From contig JALMLS010000165.1 in the NCBI GenBank assembly GCA_038496445.1, positions 62,001 to 126,000 of the forward strand: DNA of 64,000 nt, read 5' to 3'. The number at the start of each line of letters is the position of its first letter. The first letter of the stretch is position 1. Below the pieces are notes generated by a model. That model made no database searches and had not been told where the DNA came from. It worked only from the letters and a program-made list of their open reading frames with translations. Source of the DNA: Trichosphaerium sp. ATCC 40318 (taxonomy: Eukaryota; Protista; Tubulinea). Shown here piece by piece: positions 29,667 through 45,746 of the stretch. Both the position numbers and the translations under genes were made by a program.

Positions 29667-32604
29667 ATGTCTCTTGATAAATACTTCCATCCTAAAACAA
29701 CCAGTACGATATAACGTCATTTGGGAGTTGTTTTCATTCGTTTATTAATTTTTTGAATACAGAACGTAAGCATGTTGCTATTGGTAATACAGCAGTGTCA
29801 ACAGCGCAAATTTCAGACAAACCACCTCCAAAGCGAAGGAAAACAGAATTTAAAGCAGGAAAAGACGTTGTTTGGCCTAAAGATACTAAAACGCAACCAC
29901 AACAGAAACGTACAGACCCAGCACAGATATTTGATAATTTAAACCTTCCAGTGTTAAAAACGACTACACCGAGTATTTCAAGCGAAACAGTGCGTCAAAC
30001 AATTAAATCCAAACGATTTAAAAGCCATACACGATCGTTAACTACCGCCCTTTTTTACCTAATAAGTGACAGAATACTCCTGTTAACCTAGTATCATCAC
30101 CTGAGGATACCTTAGAAGATGCATGGGATAGCTACCATGTTAAATTACCTTGTTCTGCAAAGAGCACTCTGTACAACAAAAACAAACCTGATAAACCGTT
30201 GAGCAGATGGTATTTGATCCAGTCTGTTCTTAGTGAGACTATATCAACTCCAGAAGAGCTACAGGCACGTTAAACCTACAAAAGAAAAATTTTAATCTTT
30301 TCTTTTGTTTGAACGTATCATTACATTCACGGAATTGTTCGCTTTGTGCTTATGGTTTTCTTTAGTCAACAATACTTGCGTATAATAAGCATCCAGAAAT
30401 ATCGGAGGATTGGGAGCTTGATGGTATTGAAACTTTTTTTGAAGATGTACTAGACGAAGAGGTCGCTACTGAGTGAGTACAACTACTTTTTATTCTGATC
30501 AAAGATAAATTTGCTTTTAACATACTTCACGTGTTGCATCACGTGATTTAAAACACCAACTGATATTTTTATAAACAATGTTTTAAAAACATTTTGTTAT
30601 TTGGTGCACGTGCGTGTGCAGTGAACCACGTGATTACTGCTTTGTAAGACTAACTTTTTACCGTTTAGTTTTTTTGTTAATACTCTTCCATTTATACAAA
30701 AACTGGCTTTATCGCTTCCTGATGTTTGTAAAAAGCCTATTCCGTTACTTATTAAATATGTGGATAACTGTATAATGCTATCACAACACCAAATTGCTGC
30801 TTTATTAGCAAATATGTTTTTTTGTACATTCCCAAACAGGTACGTTATTGCAACTGAAATTTGGACCTGAATGCTTGCATTGTTTAAATGGGCTTATGGT
30901 TTCTGTTTTATAGGGAGTATAGAATGTCTGAGAAGCGTTTCAAAGACTACTGTACAGTAAATTTTAACAGGCTTTGGTGTGAACCTTTCAAACCGAACAA
31001 GCAAGAGAAAATCAAAGCTATTATTAGATATTTCGAACAACTTCGTGAAAAAAGTACGTGCTTTCGACATTGTTTTTTTGTCCTTCTTTTGGATGTATTG
31101 ATTGATGTTTAATATTTTTCTTAGTGCCTGATGGTAATGTAACATTTCATCGTCGTGTTACTTCAGATGAGATTGATTGGAGAGAATCTAAAAAACAATT
31201 AAGTAAAGTTGATGTCCACGCAAAAGGTTTAATAGAAGGTTAGTCTTACAGTTATTTAAAAATTGTCAACCAAGTTAATGTGTTTGTATAGATGCTGAGG
31301 GAGATGTTTTACAAGTTGATTTTGCAAATAAATTAATAGGTGGAGGTGTAATAGGCAACGTAAGTTTAGTTTAATCGAACAAGTCAATTTTTTATTTTCC
31401 ATATTTTTTTTTGTTTTACGTCGTTTTCTGGAGTTAAATTTTGGCTATAGGGATGTGTACAGGAGGAAATAAGGTTTATTATTAATACAGAATGTATTGT
31501 AAGCAGACTTTTTACAGCTGGTATGCGATAAGCTTTATTTTTTTGGACAGTTAGATTGTTGTTTCTTAAAAAAAACATTTAGTTCTTGAAGACAATGAGT
31601 GTGTTGTTATTAAAGGAGCTCAACGGTTTACCAACTATGAAGGGTATGCATCAAGTTATAAATGTACTGGAGATTGCAGTGATGAAACTGACAGGTACCC
31701 GAAAGAGGTGTTTGTTTATTCTAACTTTTTGTTTTCTGAAAAAGAGACTCTTTGAAACGGCGGAACCATACGATTGTTGCTATTGATGCAAAGAAGTTTT
31801 CTTCAGTTGGAGTACAATTCCAGTACAAATATATAAACAGAGAGTTAATTAAGGCTCACTGTGGGTTTTCTGCTACTGACTGTCCGAGCACAGCGCCTGT
31901 TGCTACTGGTATGATGAAGTTGTTTTCTCGTTTTTTTCTTTTTTTTTAAAAATTGCCTCACCTCCTTGCCTTTCTAATAAAATAATTTAGGTCATTGGTA
32001 TGTTGTTTATAATAGTAATGGATTACTTAGTATATGGTGAGTTTAAATGCTAATTATTTTTTAAAGGGGTTGTGGCGCTTTTAAAGGTCATAAAGAGTTG
32101 AAAGCTATAATACAAGTTATGGCAGCATCACAAGCTGGAAGAGATGTAATATACTATTGCTTTGGTGATCAAACATTCGTAGATAAGTTTAATAATGTGC
32201 TGGAAGTATGTAAATCTAATTCTGTAACAGTCGGTACGTACCCTTACAAGAACAGTTTTTTTTATCTTGTTTTATCTGCTTTCCCATTTTTTTCGCTTTT
32301 TTTTCTTTGTTGGTTTTTGGCACTGAGGGTACCTCTTTTCATCAATCGTGTTATCAAAACTGTACCTTATGTTAATATTTGGATTTGTGTTAACAGTTCA
32401 AGACTTTGATCTAATTTTGTTCTCGTAGGTCAACTCATGAATGTTTTGACTAAGTATTTATCATTGTACGAGATGGTTTTTTTTATCTTGTTTACTTACA
32501 TGTCTATTAGTTTGAGAACAAATCATAGTAGTGGTAAAAATAACTTCAAATTATTTGATTATTTTCTAGCAAAATACGGAGCAAATAAAGAAAATTCAAG
32601 GTAG
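29667..32604 (+). CDS. PARG: Poly(ADP-ribose) glycohydrolase
   Basis: [45 protein letters not shown] (intact GGG-x-QEE), IVAIDA, INRELIKA, ATGHWGCGAFKG. Confidence 0.95.
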
Positions 32605-32870: not shown

Positions 32871-33877
32871 CTAGGAGAACTCATATACTAGCACTGCACC
32901 AAGTATCACGATATCTGCAACAAGACCTAAAAAGTCACAGCCCTTTTTATAATAAACATCAGATCTAATCTTAGACACCATGCGATAAAATGTATCTTTA
33001 TCGTCTTTACTTAGTGGCCTGCTTTGTCCCCATGTTGATACATAAAACACTTTACTCGTATCAACCTTCAAGGTCATAGCTGACTTCACTTCGCAGATCA
33101 ATTTGCTAGGCACCCTGTCCATGTGTGTTACACAAACAATAGGCTTGATTCCTTTAAACAAAAGTAAACACGTGGTATAACACTTAATTAGACATACCTC
33201 CTAATGATGCTATACTCTTACACAGCTTGCTGATTTTTATACATTGTTCAGTAGCTACCGTATCAATGGTCTCTGTATGCTTTTCTGTTGCATTGAAAAA
33301 AACCCACACTTTCTTCACCGTTGTATACGTTCTACTGGATTTTGCTTAGATTGCTGGCATTTTGCTAAACAAGGGATTACCGTACGTTAATTTTTTACAG
33401 AGAGTCTCTGCATTCACAACTAGTATGATGTGATCAATTTTATTGTTAAGATCTTTGATTGGATTGATACGGCGAGAAGTTAAATCAGTACTCTTACATC
33501 CAAACAAAGTCAGTTTTGTTTTGATTAAAAGTATGACACGTACTTCTGCCATTCCTTCAATGAGTGTTTTTATAAGAACAACGTCACTTTCTGACAGAGG
33601 TACGTTGAACGTTCTTCCAGCAGTATCAAAAAAATTAAACGTCTTGGCGTTATTAGTTGTAACCTAAGCTGCTACATTAATCTGTAACAAAGTTCAATGC
33701 TTGTACTTTTAACTGCCCGTATAAACTAGTTCCACGACCTCCTGTTCTACCAGTTGGTAGTCTTGGAATACTCCAACCGCAAAGTAAATGACCAAAGGTG
33801 TTCCCAACACTGCTTTTCCCACTATGATTCTCTCCAACTAGGAGCACATTATAAGCGTCACTTGGCTTGTCATACAT
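32871..33877 (-). CDS. IFI44-like P-loop GTPase, copy A, with C-terminal hydrophobic tail
   Basis: YNVLLVGENHSGKSSVGNTF (G1), FFDTAG (G3), IDHIILVV, PIVCVTHMD (G4); ends FLGLVADIVILGAVLVYEFS. Confidence 0.65.
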
Positions 33878-34095
33878 GTTAAGACAATGTAGATTTTTAA
33901 CGTCAATCACATATTTTTAGAGCGGGGCCACGTGCTTCTGTGAACAGTATTCTTAGTCCATCCACAAGTTGCTGTAAGGAACTGAACTGTAACGTACTTC
34001 CGTATGTCATAATGTAGGTTGAGATTCTGACTGCTGAGTTAAGTCACAGTTCAAATTTTTGATATGATTATCATCACGTGACAGTAACGGCTGTG

Positions 34096-34720
34096 ATGGA
34101 TAATAATAGCTCTACGTACTATGTCGCAAGTTCTGATCCATTTTATACAAAACACATTACAGCAGCTCTAGAACCATTCTACAATACTCGTTCACTAACT
34201 CCAAGCGTCAACAACAAACATAACTACTTTTTTTTCTTCGCTGATACCTCACGAAGTGATATCTTCTTTGATAGACTCGATGGGCGATTGAACCATCAAA
34301 CGGATGTCCTTGAAGATATAGCAAATCTTAACGAAGGTGACTGACGCTTTGTGGTTCTGTAAAACTGACAACAAGCTAACTCAATTTCTTGTTTTTAGGA
34401 AAACTACCATCAAACTTTACAATCATAATTCTTCCTCTATCACCTCAGGCTGATAAAAGAATTCATATTGGAGGATACCTAAGTAGCATAGAGTGCGATT
34501 TTTATCATATAGTTTAATCTCATACCCATGCTTACTTGCACAAAGAGATCATCTTGTTTCGGAGTGGTTTTCACAGGATAGAATTATTATCTGTAGCGAG
34601 AGTGATATGAACGTATTACGCCAAAACCGTATACCAAATGCAATTAAAGTTAATACTTCTGATTTATCATACAAACAACCTTTCTTGCATCGCTTTTTGT
34701 TTTTTTGTGGTAGCAAATAA
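34096..34720 (+). CDS. Small alpha/beta protein, partner gene B (possibly TIR/SEFIR-like)
   Basis: Three exons; near-identical paralog at 34980-36041; pattern YYVASSDPFYTKHITAALEPF..YFFFFA..LEDIANL..IIILPL. Confidence 0.55.
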
Positions 34721-34979
34721 AAAATACTTGTATGGATTAATATTTAGTCTTAATAGTTGTATGAGGTATTATACAACCATTTACTTTGTTGCTATGCTTT
34801 TAGTAAAAAAAGTTGAGATGAATACATAGGTAACCAACCAAGAGAGTAAGCAAGCTAATATTAATTCCTAAGGAGTACAATTTTGTCTTTAACACATGTA
34901 GAAACAACATAAATGTTTGATCAAAATCAAAATCTAGTTATGAACCGTCACACGTGGCTGTATCAACAACAACGCGGTA

Positions 34980-36041
34980 CTAGTTTGTGAAGTTATTTAA
35001 TTGTTCATTTGAACATTCCAAAGTGTTTGGAGTAGCTGATGTAACCTCATTGTTTTCGATTGTTAATTTCTCAGCAGCGTCTGTTGATTTTGTATCTTCC
35101 ATTGGTTTGTCTTGACTTGTACTTTCTATTGTTTCACCCGTTGTATCTTTGTTATGCTCGCTTTCTTCTTTTACAGTAGCACTAAACTTAATAAGTGGCT
35201 GTACATTGAAGGAAATTTGTACGGGATCTCAGAATCGTGGACGTTCTCTTTCAAATTGTCATTTTTAGTCGTTCCAACTGGTTGCTCCAATTGTTTTGTG
35301 TTATCAATAGGAGTATCAGGAGTAAGATCTAACATTGTAACATCTTTCACACCATCTTCAGTGTCCGTTAATACATTGACATTACAGGCCACGTGCATGT
35401 TTTGTGAGAAATCTAAAGTTAGAATCAGTGCCGGCAAAGTGAACGTTGTTGAGAGATGTACAATTGGAAATAAGCTGCCGAATAAAACCTTTTTTGACGA
35501 ACAAGTCTGCGTTTCTGGTTGCAACAATATCAGGGATTATATTTTGGCGTAATAAGTTCATGTCACTCTCAGTACAAATGATAATTCTGTCATTCGAAAA
35601 CCATTTCATAAGAAACGGATCACTGTTTTACAAGGTGTTAGCAGCTATTATATTATGCATAAAGAGCTTACTCTAATACACTTAAGTATCCTCCAATATG
35701 AATTCTTTTATCAGCTTGAGGTGATAGAGGAAGAATTATGATTGTAAAGTTTGATGGTAGTTTTCCTAAAGACAGCTTTGTTTTAGGTGTTGTTAGTTTT
35801 GTAGACTCAAGTCACCTTCGTTAAGATTTGCTATTGCTTCTAGGGCATCTGTTTGATGGTTCAATCGCCCATCAAGTCTATCAAAGAAGATATCGCTTCG
35901 TGAGGTATCAGCGAAGAAAAAAAAGTAGTTATGTTTGTTGTTGACGCTTGGCTGTTGAGAACACGTGATATTGAATGGTTTTAGAGCTAAAGAAATATTG
36001 CTCGCGTAAAATGGATCAGAGCTCGCAAAGTAAGTAACCAT
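34980..36041 (-). CDS. Partner gene B' with acidic/Thr-rich C-terminal extension
   Basis: MVTYFASSDPFYASNISLALKPF..; core almost identical to 34200-34490; extra low-complexity exons 35380-34980 (joining uncertain). Confidence 0.55.
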
Positions 36042-36412
36042 CGAAGGGTAGCGTTCTTCACCCCTATTTCTTTATAATTGACAAGCACGTGACTTAAACA
36101 AACTGGCTACAACCAAATAACGACAACTCAGTCGGAATCTCAACCTCACAGAACGTAGGGTACATTATGACATAATATACCTTACACATAAGTACGTTAC
36201 AGCTCAGTTCCTTACAGCTCAGTTCCTTACAGCAACTTGTGGATGGCCTAAGAATACTATTCAGTTAAAATACCTGGCCTCGACTTTAAACCAGCTACTG
36301 CACTCTTCCGTTACGTGTTGTTACAGCTGTAGACAATATGACTTTGACCATCAAAAACTAACGAACAACAATCCAACTACAAAACTTTAAAAACACCTAC
36401 CAGACGCAACAC

Positions 36413-37410
36413 ATGTCAGAACCAGCAACACAAGCATACAACGTACTTCTAATGGGAGATAACCATAGCGGCAAAAGCAGTATTGGTAACACGTTCGGTC
36501 ATGAACTTGCTGAATGGGATATTCCAAAGCTGCCAGCTGGGAGAAAGGGTGCACGTGGTACAAACAATTTAGGGCGACACATGGTACGGTACTATCATCG
36601 CAACCTGAAATCTATGTTTACTATTTCAATAGATAGAATGTATGAAGCCAATACAGTACAAACGTGAGAGTTGTGAGCCCAAGATACTCAACTTTTTTGA
36701 TACAGCTGGAAGGAAGTTTAGCGTGCCTCTATCAGAAGGTGATATTCTACTTCTCAAACAACTTATTGCAGGGATGAAAGTTGTACGTTTTCATGTTGTA
36801 ACTGTAAGCGCACATTTCTGACTTGTACGGATTATTAGGGTACCGACTTGACAAGCAACAAGTGGATTGATGCTGGCACCAATTCAGACAATAAGATTGA
36901 TCACATCATTCTAGTTGTGAGTGCTGAGACTATTTGTAAGAAAGTAACGTGCGTGTATTTCGCAGGAACCGCCTGACTTAGTTTTAAAAAAAAAAAGGAT
37001 AACTTACACTACTGGTTCGAAAGGATGGTTTAGCGACACGAGGAAAACCCATACCAAAACCACATATGAAATATCTATTGAAGAAGTCAAGTTCATAAAG
37101 GAACTGTACAATGAGAGTATGAAAAGACTTGGTGGAGGTACTACTTTTTGTTCAAGGCCAACTCTTTCTCTGAATTGAACTTCTCTTTTTTTTCATAGCC
37201 TTCTACCCAATTGTTTGCTGCACGCACATGGACAAGGTACCAAATGATAAGGTAGATGATATCAAGCAGGCCTTGAGATTAATGGTTCATGAGACCAACG
37301 TGTTTTTTGTATCTACTTGGGGACTAGATAGAGATATTGAAAAGTACAGAGAGACTTTCAACTTAATGGCACTTAAGATCGTAATGGATGTTGACCAGGC
37401 ATCAAAATAA
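36413..37410 (+). CDS. IFI44-like P-loop GTPase, copy A'
   Basis: YNVLLMGDNHSGKSSIGNTF, FFDTAG, IDHIILVV, PIVCCTHMD, FFVSTWG; same intron layout as copy A; no hydrophobic tail. Confidence 0.65.
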
Positions 37411-38884: not shown

Positions 38885-39563
38885 ATGAGTTTGCTTGATT
38901 TGCCATTTGAACTTCAGCTACTTATTATAAGCGCTGATCACAGTATTTACTGTATATGGCCTTTATTTTCGAAAATAGCTGCTACCACAACCAGATATGA
39001 TAATAATCTAAACAAACATGGTCAGTTCAGGCGATGTAGTACAAAACCAAGTCATCACAAGGTAGGTAGAACATTATAAAAAAAACAGCATAAGAAATGT
39101 TGATTTTGTCCCTGACACGTGCTTCAGATCACCAACTTTAGTTAAAGATAATTATGTGTAATTAATACAAGTTTTTTAGTTGTATGCATACAGTGAAATA
39201 CAATATGAGTATGCTGTCTTTGAACATGGATTATTAACTGGAGAATACAAGAAGACTGATTCAAAAGGCACAATACTTGCGAAAGAGAACTATGTGAAAG
39301 GACTTAAACATGGTTGCTCTGAAACACGTTCGGGTAATGGAGCGATATTAATTGAAGGAGAATATCATAAAGGATCAAAGCATGGAGAATTTTGGAGTTA
39401 TAGATATGATGGACAAGTGATTGATGTGAAATATTATCTTGCAGGTGTAAGTGTAGATCACGATACTTTTCAACAAGGTGACGAGCTACTAAAATCTAAA
39501 AGTGTATGTGATATTGCTCATTACTTAGTATTGAGATCAATTATTCAGTGTAACTCTACATAA
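38885..39563 (+). CDS. F-box-like + MORN-variant repeat protein (intron-containing paralog)
   Basis: MSLLDLPFELQLLII..WPLFSKIAATTTRYD matches 17317 N-terminus; MORN2 repeats GLKHG, GSKHGEF in second exon. Confidence 0.7.
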
Positions 39564-44945: not shown

Positions 44946-45746
44946 TTACATCATAGTACACCGTCTTTTTCTTTTACCAATAGGCTCTGTTATATTTTTT
45001 GCCATCTTTCTAACAAGTTGATAAAAAGATTCTTCAATATTAACACGTGTTTTTGCTGACGTCTCAAAAAAATCAAGTTTATAATGTTTAGCAAGCTCTT
45101 GGCCTTCTGCTATTGATACTTTTCTATGTTCTTCAATATCTACTTTATTACCAACCAACACACCAGGAAACGAGTTCACACCCTTAACTCTAAAGCAAAA
45201 AGTGAGACATCCTAACGATTAAACCCAAATGGTTATGTTTTCTCAGAAATTTTCTGTCGTGCTCCTTCTCAGGAGTTACTGGACTTTAGGCTGTAATTAG
45301 TACCTGATAATGCTCTCACAATATTCTGGGATTTTTTCAAAGGATAATCGGCTTGTCATATCATACACAACATAAAATCCTTCGCAGGAACGTATGTACT
45401 ATTAAAAAAAAATGAGATTTCCAATGTTTTTTTTTCAAAATACCTCACCGTGTCATACATTGTAAAATACTCTTCTCTGCCAGCTGTATCAAGAATGCTC
45501 AATGTCACTTCTTCACCATCTACTTCGCATCGTTTACGGTACCTAAAGGGAGTAAGAGGCTTTGTGTAACGTAAAAAGGCTAAAAGAGCTCTAAATGGCT
45601 CAAAAGTTACTAAAACGTGTAGTGTAGTACTCATTTTCTATTGTTGGGTCGTAATCAGCGATAAATTTGTCTAGTGCTACTCGTAATGTTATGTTTGATT
45701 TTCCAACTCCGCCTTGTCCAAGAACTACTATATTGTGCATTGACAT
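44946..45746 (-). CDS. Ras-family GTPase with Q61R-equivalent
   Basis: GQGGVGKS, YDPTIEN, LDTAGREEY, GNKVD, ETSAK, CAAX CTMM. Confidence 0.92.

Follow-up and report, generated by a model that had tools for sequence, protein, structure and literature searches.

The window analysed here is a stretch of 64,000 nucleotides from Trichosphaerium sp. ATCC 40318 (contig JALMLS010000165.1; G000:C132:62001-126000), and its positions 32871-37410 are a palindromic duplication of an approximately 2-kb cassette of two head-to-head genes, a gene A with GTPase motifs and a gene B without known relatives. This orphan pair is genuine, conserved and expressed, and it recurs at two further loci of the genome. 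We hold it evenly in the balance that the two genes form a lineage-specific, co-regulated and functionally coupled module of a GTPase and its partner. An earlier note on this DNA had described the duplicated pair as a candidate immune unit of an IFI44-like GTPase and a TIR-like protein; its observation was largely right, and its interpretation is mostly unproven.

The assembly that was searched comprises 70 Mb in 642 contigs, and the window has a guanine-plus-cytosine content of about 36%. A repeat search matched seven inverted arm pairs between 33109-34626 and 35542-37241 (71-91% complementary), and together with frame reading these give the order A(-) B(+) B'(-) A'(+), in agreement with the earlier description of a two-gene unit present twice in inverted orientation. 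B/B' and a block of the spacer are 85-91% identical, and the A/A' arms 71-86%, with a synonymous divergence (dS) of 1.7 between A and A'. The inner palindrome has probably undergone homogenisation; alternatively, the copies of A are diverging faster. Introns in this genome are short (41-248 nt in the six verified cases). The locus is laid out as follows.

32871-33877, minus strand: gene A, predicted divergent TRAFAC-type GTPase of about 284 amino acids (aa); exons 33707-33877, 33544-33663, 33388-33492, 33199-33333 and 32874-33158, stop codon 32871-32873.
33878-34095, no strand: A/B intergenic region of 218 bp between divergent starts, a presumed bidirectional promoter.
34096-34720, plus strand: gene B, orphan protein of predicted alpha/beta fold, 169 aa; exons 34096-34336, 34399-34492 and 34546-34717, then stop.
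34953-35370, minus strand: unique palindrome centre, with D/E/T-rich open frames downstream of B', a putative 3' extension of B'.
35385-36041, minus strand: gene B', paralogue of B, minimal model of about 185 aa; exon pieces 35814-36041, 35677-35763 and 35385-35621.
36042-36412, no strand: B'/A' intergenic region of 371 bp, with a tandem GTTCCTTACAG-type repeat and one CACGTG.
36413-37410, plus strand: gene A', predicted GTPase paralogue of about 261 aa without the hydrophobic tail; exon pieces 36413-36583, 36633-36782, 36839-36946, 36999-37136 and 37201-37407.

An exon-by-exon search of the whole assembly located the head-to-head A/B pair also at G000:C26 and G000:C5, which brings the total to four pairs. 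The linkage is not confined to the duplication in the window, and the two-gene unit is kept together in all four pairs at three loci, as the earlier note's reading of it as a unit had implied. No solo A and no solo B of this subfamily was found in the assembly. Between the three loci, a tblastx comparison with 10-kb flanks showed shared homology only in the cassette of about 2 kb. All eight cassette genes have open frames; their GT-AG introns (43-78 nt) lie at homologous positions, two of the B introns having been read by hand from the DNA. Nei-Gojobori counts summed exon by exon gave ratios of nonsynonymous to synonymous divergence (dN/dS) of 0.13-0.35 for all A pairs and all computable B pairs. 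Only B/B' has an unsaturated dS below 1 (0.66), all other pairs exceeding 1 or being saturated. The cassette genes are under purifying selection, with dS mostly saturated. The gene A tree is star-like, as indicated by nearly equal four-point sums. No relatives of A or B were found in IMG/VR, the JGI metagenomes or the GTDB genomes, where one Gracilibacillus match covered only the P-loop. The four alignments used (A6, A11, A12 and A15) were checked by eye, and in those anchored on the B product P0001 the paralogue exons were entered as separate rows.

CACGTG is found twice in the A/B spacer, and a block of 58 nt (33941-33999 / 36190-36263) is 91% conserved between the A/B and B'/A' spacers; this block contains GTTCCTTACAG-type repeats, themselves doubled in tandem in the B'/A' copy, and does not occur in the C26 or C5 spacers. 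At C26, the 5' end of the A transcript L022 lies 70 nt upstream of the ATG, and the inferred start codon of the adjacent B gene (B26) is at most 64 nt away from this end. Over the window as a whole, CACGTG occurs 63 times against 8.9 expected, a count that none of 100 shuffles reached. The sites (for example 32763, 33929, 34075, 36086 and 37480) tend to lie in spacers, close to the starts and ends of genes but outside them, and CACGTG probably serves this genome as a general promoter or terminator signal.

The coupled GTPase-partner module is favoured because the four old copies are all intact and constrained, because the genes are always divergent across 134-371 bp, and because the two starts at C26 lie close together. 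We infer from this a physical or functional coupling of A and B and a biological role for the pair. In such a module A would act as a GTP-dependent switch, B would serve A as a dedicated regulator, effector or heterodimer partner, and the shared short promoter would keep the expression of the two in step, while the tail-anchored version of A may operate at a membrane. Several points weigh against this. Block duplication copies both genes, so the linkage could be passive; B is without a recognisable functional motif or relative; no element of at least 8 nt is common to all four spacers; and in the accessible transcriptome pair 1 is represented by B and pair 3 by A, neither together with its own partner. 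Passive linkage, in which the cassette was block-copied three times and the functions of A and B are unrelated, strikes us as a minority possibility that deserves to be taken seriously. It would account for an inter-locus homology spanning exactly two genes, and it agrees with the missing co-detection of partner transcripts and with the lack of a common motif in the four promoters; short-spacer head-to-head neighbours are, moreover, common in compact protist genomes. However, it sits poorly with both genes being intact and under purifying selection in four of four copies, though dS is saturated, and with the absence of solo copies from the genome. If A and B truly cooperate, they would constitute a clean lineage-specific GTPase module, the four diverged copies of which would be a ready-made series for interface mapping, and the pair would be a good case for how new regulatory pairs arise in protists.

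Gene A encodes products of 260-285 aa across the copies. The earlier note had listed a G1 motif, a G3 DTAG, IDHIILVV and THMD, and these are present in both A and A', with G1 in the form G(E/D)NHSGKSS. Across the four copies the motifs follow in canonical order, namely G(D/E/G)(N/Q)H(S/Q/A)GKSS, RGT, NFFDTAGR, NKID.I[IV]LV, VC[VC]THMD and STWG, among which GKSS, the G2 RGT, the G3 NFFDTAGR and the G4 variant THMD are invariant. A motif test for the TRAFAC class likewise found G1, the switch-I threonine, G3 and G4, all in order. Judged by its sequence, gene A is a very divergent, motif-complete P-loop GTPase of TRAFAC type with predicted activity, and the call of a P-loop GTPase in the earlier note holds. 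Its introns (43-51 nt, GT-AG) occupy positions homologous to those of the introns verified in P0003. This 270-aa MMETSP/JGI product comes from the fully spliced transcript of the C26 copy and confirms the five-exon model. P0002, a 118-aa product of the partially spliced JGI transcript contig L021, was the only A product retrieved by word search, and P0003 sits in its 90% cluster. Compared with L016:4825-6227, L021 (JGI 3300016894, 1365 nt) has lost the 44-nt intron 1 and retains introns 2-4, whereas L022 is fully spliced, which suggests that splicing of the C26 A transcript is ordered or inefficient. The two transcripts verify introns as short as 41-44 nt.

No Pfam family reaches its cut-off on P0003, the best GTPase match being MMR_HSR1 (E 0.045; 14.3 bits against a cut-off of 21.9), and weak matches were obtained to Roc on P0002 (E 0.024) and to EngB on the G4 exon. 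Among the language-model matches listed for the last A exon in the protein Atlas, every named Pfam family is a GTPase or P-loop family, the fragments being sub-threshold. Neither P0003 nor the profile anchored on it (A15) detected a solved relative in the PDB beyond the P-loop, and exon-by-exon scans of A against Pfam, PDB, NCBIfam and PADLOC gave weak P-loop or EngB-type matches only. The PADLOC anti-phage profiles gave only P-loop noise (E at least 0.045). An exact-product look-up of the unspliced A, A' and B' open reading frames (ORFs) and of P0001 gave no match. One copy has gained a distinctive C-terminus: in A, a 19-aa stretch has a Kyte-Doolittle mean of 2.19 with four residues beyond it, and the other three copies do not exceed 0.79, so that the hydrophobic tail reported for A and not for A' is indeed there. 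This tail suggests that the tail-anchored copy works on a membrane.

Gene B is an expressed orphan without detectable sequence relatives. The C26 exon-1 frame, used in a word search, retrieved P0001, a complete 169-aa MMETSP ORF that maps onto the three exons of B in the window with one residue different, which indicates that B is transcribed and spliced as modelled. P0001 had no match in Pfam, PDB, NCBIfam or PADLOC; its word search in a set of 5.8 billion clusters returned only itself, and a profile of P0001 and the paralogue exon rows (A6) run against 1.84 billion representative proteins retrieved only P0001 at E<=0.001. No feature matches for B were found in the protein Atlas. Word search found no transcripts of B' or B26 and is the sole test of their absence, since the 1.84-billion library was collapsed at 50% identity. 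The B paralogues conserve ASS[DE], FFFAD..RSDIFF...DGRLN..TD.LE, GKLPSNF, R-I...GY and D..L..WF....I[IL][IL]C..SD. According to the secondary-structure string, not coordinates, the invariant Ser/Asp-rich loops (ASSD, FFFAD..RSD and C.ESD) follow predicted parallel strands; the side of the loops after such strands is the usual site of ligand or partner binding in doubly wound folds.

The alternation of strands and helices seen in B by the earlier note is backed by an AlphaFold2 model, which from alignment A12 reached a predicted local distance difference test score (pLDDT) of 70.8 and a predicted template modelling score (pTM) of 0.70, after a first run from A6 with a pLDDT of 56.8. The model has four beta-alpha units with strands at residues 7-12, 42-49, 87-93 and 125-127. 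Foldseek found nothing at E<=1e-3 for this model in PDB and BFVD, flavodoxins heading the list. VIA-align returned 244 chains at Z>=5, with a best Z of 7.2 for a CheY receiver and for Der/EngA, 6.3-6.9 for TIR/SEFIR domains and 6.0-7.2 for GTPase domains; a Z below 8 may mean a common arrangement only, and the B matches lie within the background of the aligner. B is on the basis of this model a predicted doubly wound, flavodoxin-like alpha/beta protein. As TIR, CheY-receiver and GTPase domains tie at Z 6-7, TIR cannot be separated as a label and is one of several equally good ones. Among residues 94-124 of the four paralogues, P, L, R, I, Y, D and WF are invariant and no Glu is; the position preceding the invariant Asp is occupied by E, D, K or G. 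No Glu is conserved in the four paralogues after the third strand, where NAD-consuming TIR domains carry their catalytic Glu; this check used translations and DNA with manual splice reading, an alignment of B to TIR not being established. The tentative assignment of B as a TIR protein is not supported: B has no profile or sequence match to TIR and lacks the conserved Glu, and its Z for TIR ties with those for CheY and GTPase folds.

The GTPase matches raise another explanation, namely that B is a P-loop-less, GTPase-like (pseudo-GTPase) subunit heterodimerising with A, which we regard as improbable. GTPase domains make up about half of the 50 best structural matches of B (Z 6.0-7.2, 113-133 residues aligned), including Der/EngA, TrmE, SelB, Roc of LRRK1/2, EngB, GIMAP7 and IRGQ, and by-eye reading of the sequence shows strand 2 followed by a Walker-B-like FFFFAD and strand 4 by an SxxD. 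Pairing of this kind has parallels in the regulator/effector pairs of immunity-related GTPases or GIMAPs and in the Rag heterodimers. Nevertheless, profile-profile comparison of B with every A exon gave probabilities below 1%, and the Z scores are within the aligner background and tied with CheY and TIR. B as a decayed copy of A was also considered; the match was by eye, and hhalign of B against the A exons was negative.

The immune explanation casts the pair as a defence module against viruses or bacteria, with an IFI44-like GTPase as sensor or regulator and a TIR/SEFIR-like B that consumes NAD as executor. We consider it very unlikely. The structural ties that speak for it include IL-1RAcPb (Z 6.9), TLR15 (6.9), TIRAP (6.8), RPS4/RRS1 (6.7), CD38 (6.7), the Act1 SEFIR (6.4) and SARM1 (6.3); Tetraselmis virus 1 supplies the viral-library match of highest probability, a TIR/WD40 protein (E 5e-3, probability 0.92), and the family is multi-copy, fast-diverging and lineage-restricted. 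However, no TIR, SEFIR or defence profile matches B, Foldseek gave no match at E<=1e-3, a conserved Glu after the third strand is missing, and the adjacency of a PARG gene (see below) is not conserved. The motif spacing of A resembles that of IFI44. The IFI44 hallmark TLDc had no match on P0003, in which the P-loop begins at residue 16 of 270 aa, and DTAG is followed by Arg in all four A copies. IFI44 and IFI44L are reported to carry Leu directly after DxxG, a dynamin-like feature (doi 10.1101/2020.02.24.963900). The IFI44-like label of A is a putative one at the level of the motifs, with TLDc missing and Arg in place of Leu. Nothing tested supports an immune function. A broader form, in which A and B would be a two-component switch invented in this lineage, with A as an active GTPase, tail-anchored in one copy, a TIR-like or pseudo-GTPase B under its control, and the cassette multiplied and diversified as a defence against giant viruses or intracellular bacteria, is to our minds similarly far-fetched; if true, this amoeba would have built an innate-immune module of its own, independently of those of animals and bacteria.

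The copies of B were also said to have specialised, B' carrying a long acidic extension. B' is 70% identical to B in amino acid sequence, and its third exon meets a stop at 35382-35384. Downstream lies one stop-free, D/E-rich frame of 61 codons (12 D+E, 5 K+R), and a second acidic stretch, in another frame, has a stop near 34980. Several GT-AG paths could link the acidic frames to B', each needing extra hypothetical introns, and the extension is unproven.

Outside the cassette lies the PARG gene reported as immediately adjacent.

31430-32178, plus strand (C132:93430-94178): PARG catalytic-domain gene, convergent with A, with PF05028 exon matches.

The catalytic domain is present at about this position, and the adjacency is not kept elsewhere: at C5 the nearest PARG match lies about 55 kb from the A/B pair, and at C26 there is none. 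PARG matches occur on 12 contigs, making PARG a multi-copy family in this genome. Since PARG is absent beside the other two loci and 12 contigs carry matches, its adjacency carries no weight for the immune reading. Two further features lie near the cassette: the repeats of an ORF at 39180-39563 (plus strand) look MORN-like by eye, and a Ras-like DTAGREEY motif occurs in an exon at 45356-45634 (minus strand).

A second, more distant GTPase subfamily with the G4 TNMD is found at C45 and C178, with its own conserved private neighbour, an ORF of about 179 aa with an NGGFP.CLE motif that is 38% identical between the two loci and confined to them.

L018:2403-2942, plus strand: private neighbour ORF, beside the GTPase at L018:3750+.
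L019:6192-6728, minus strand: private neighbour ORF, beside the GTPase at L019:4582+.

The orientation of this neighbour relative to the GTPase differs between L018 and L019. It had no Pfam match above the cut-off and no hhalign similarity to B. Its presence fits a general habit in this genome of a GTPase plus a private partner. A third distant GTPase paralogue at C8 (L020:4137-4337, minus strand; L020:4532-4843, plus strand) is flanked by a divergent ORF that carries an AKEPSYDNAFN motif; this motif occurs again about 1 kb further on. This neighbour was rejected as a distant B, the by-eye resemblance being unsupported (hhalign probability 0.3%).

Finally, the pair was compared with known systems. 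IFI44 and IFI44L share with A a P-loop GxxxxGKS, the DxxG of G3 and, in IFI44L, a G4 motif; a T-H-x-D form of G4 preceded by a hydrophobic strand is a further common feature. A differs in lacking TLDc, in its size of about 270 aa and in the Arg after G3, the likeness lying at the level of motifs. The GIMAP/AIG1 and small immunity-associated TRAFAC GTPases resemble A in being small and multi-copy, with occasional C-terminal anchors and hetero-pair regulation, but the AIG1 profile touches only the P-loop of A (E 0.17) and the PDB search with the A profile returned no GIMAP chain. For B, TIR/SEFIR domains offer a comparable size (about 150-170 aa) and the doubly wound parallel alpha/beta fold (Z 6.3-6.9), whereas B has neither a sequence or profile match nor the conserved Glu, and the match is inseparable from those to CheY and GTPases. 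CheY-like receivers are joint best (4qpj_D; Z 7.2, 107 residues, root-mean-square deviation 3.5), but their acidic pocket pattern (DD after strand 1, D after strand 3, T and K) is not seen in B, nor is there a Response_reg match. Although the predicted fold of B is not Roadblock/longin and no homology to such partners was found, the layout resembles MglA/MglB and the Rag heterodimers, in which a switch GTPase lies beside, or acts with, a small dedicated regulator.

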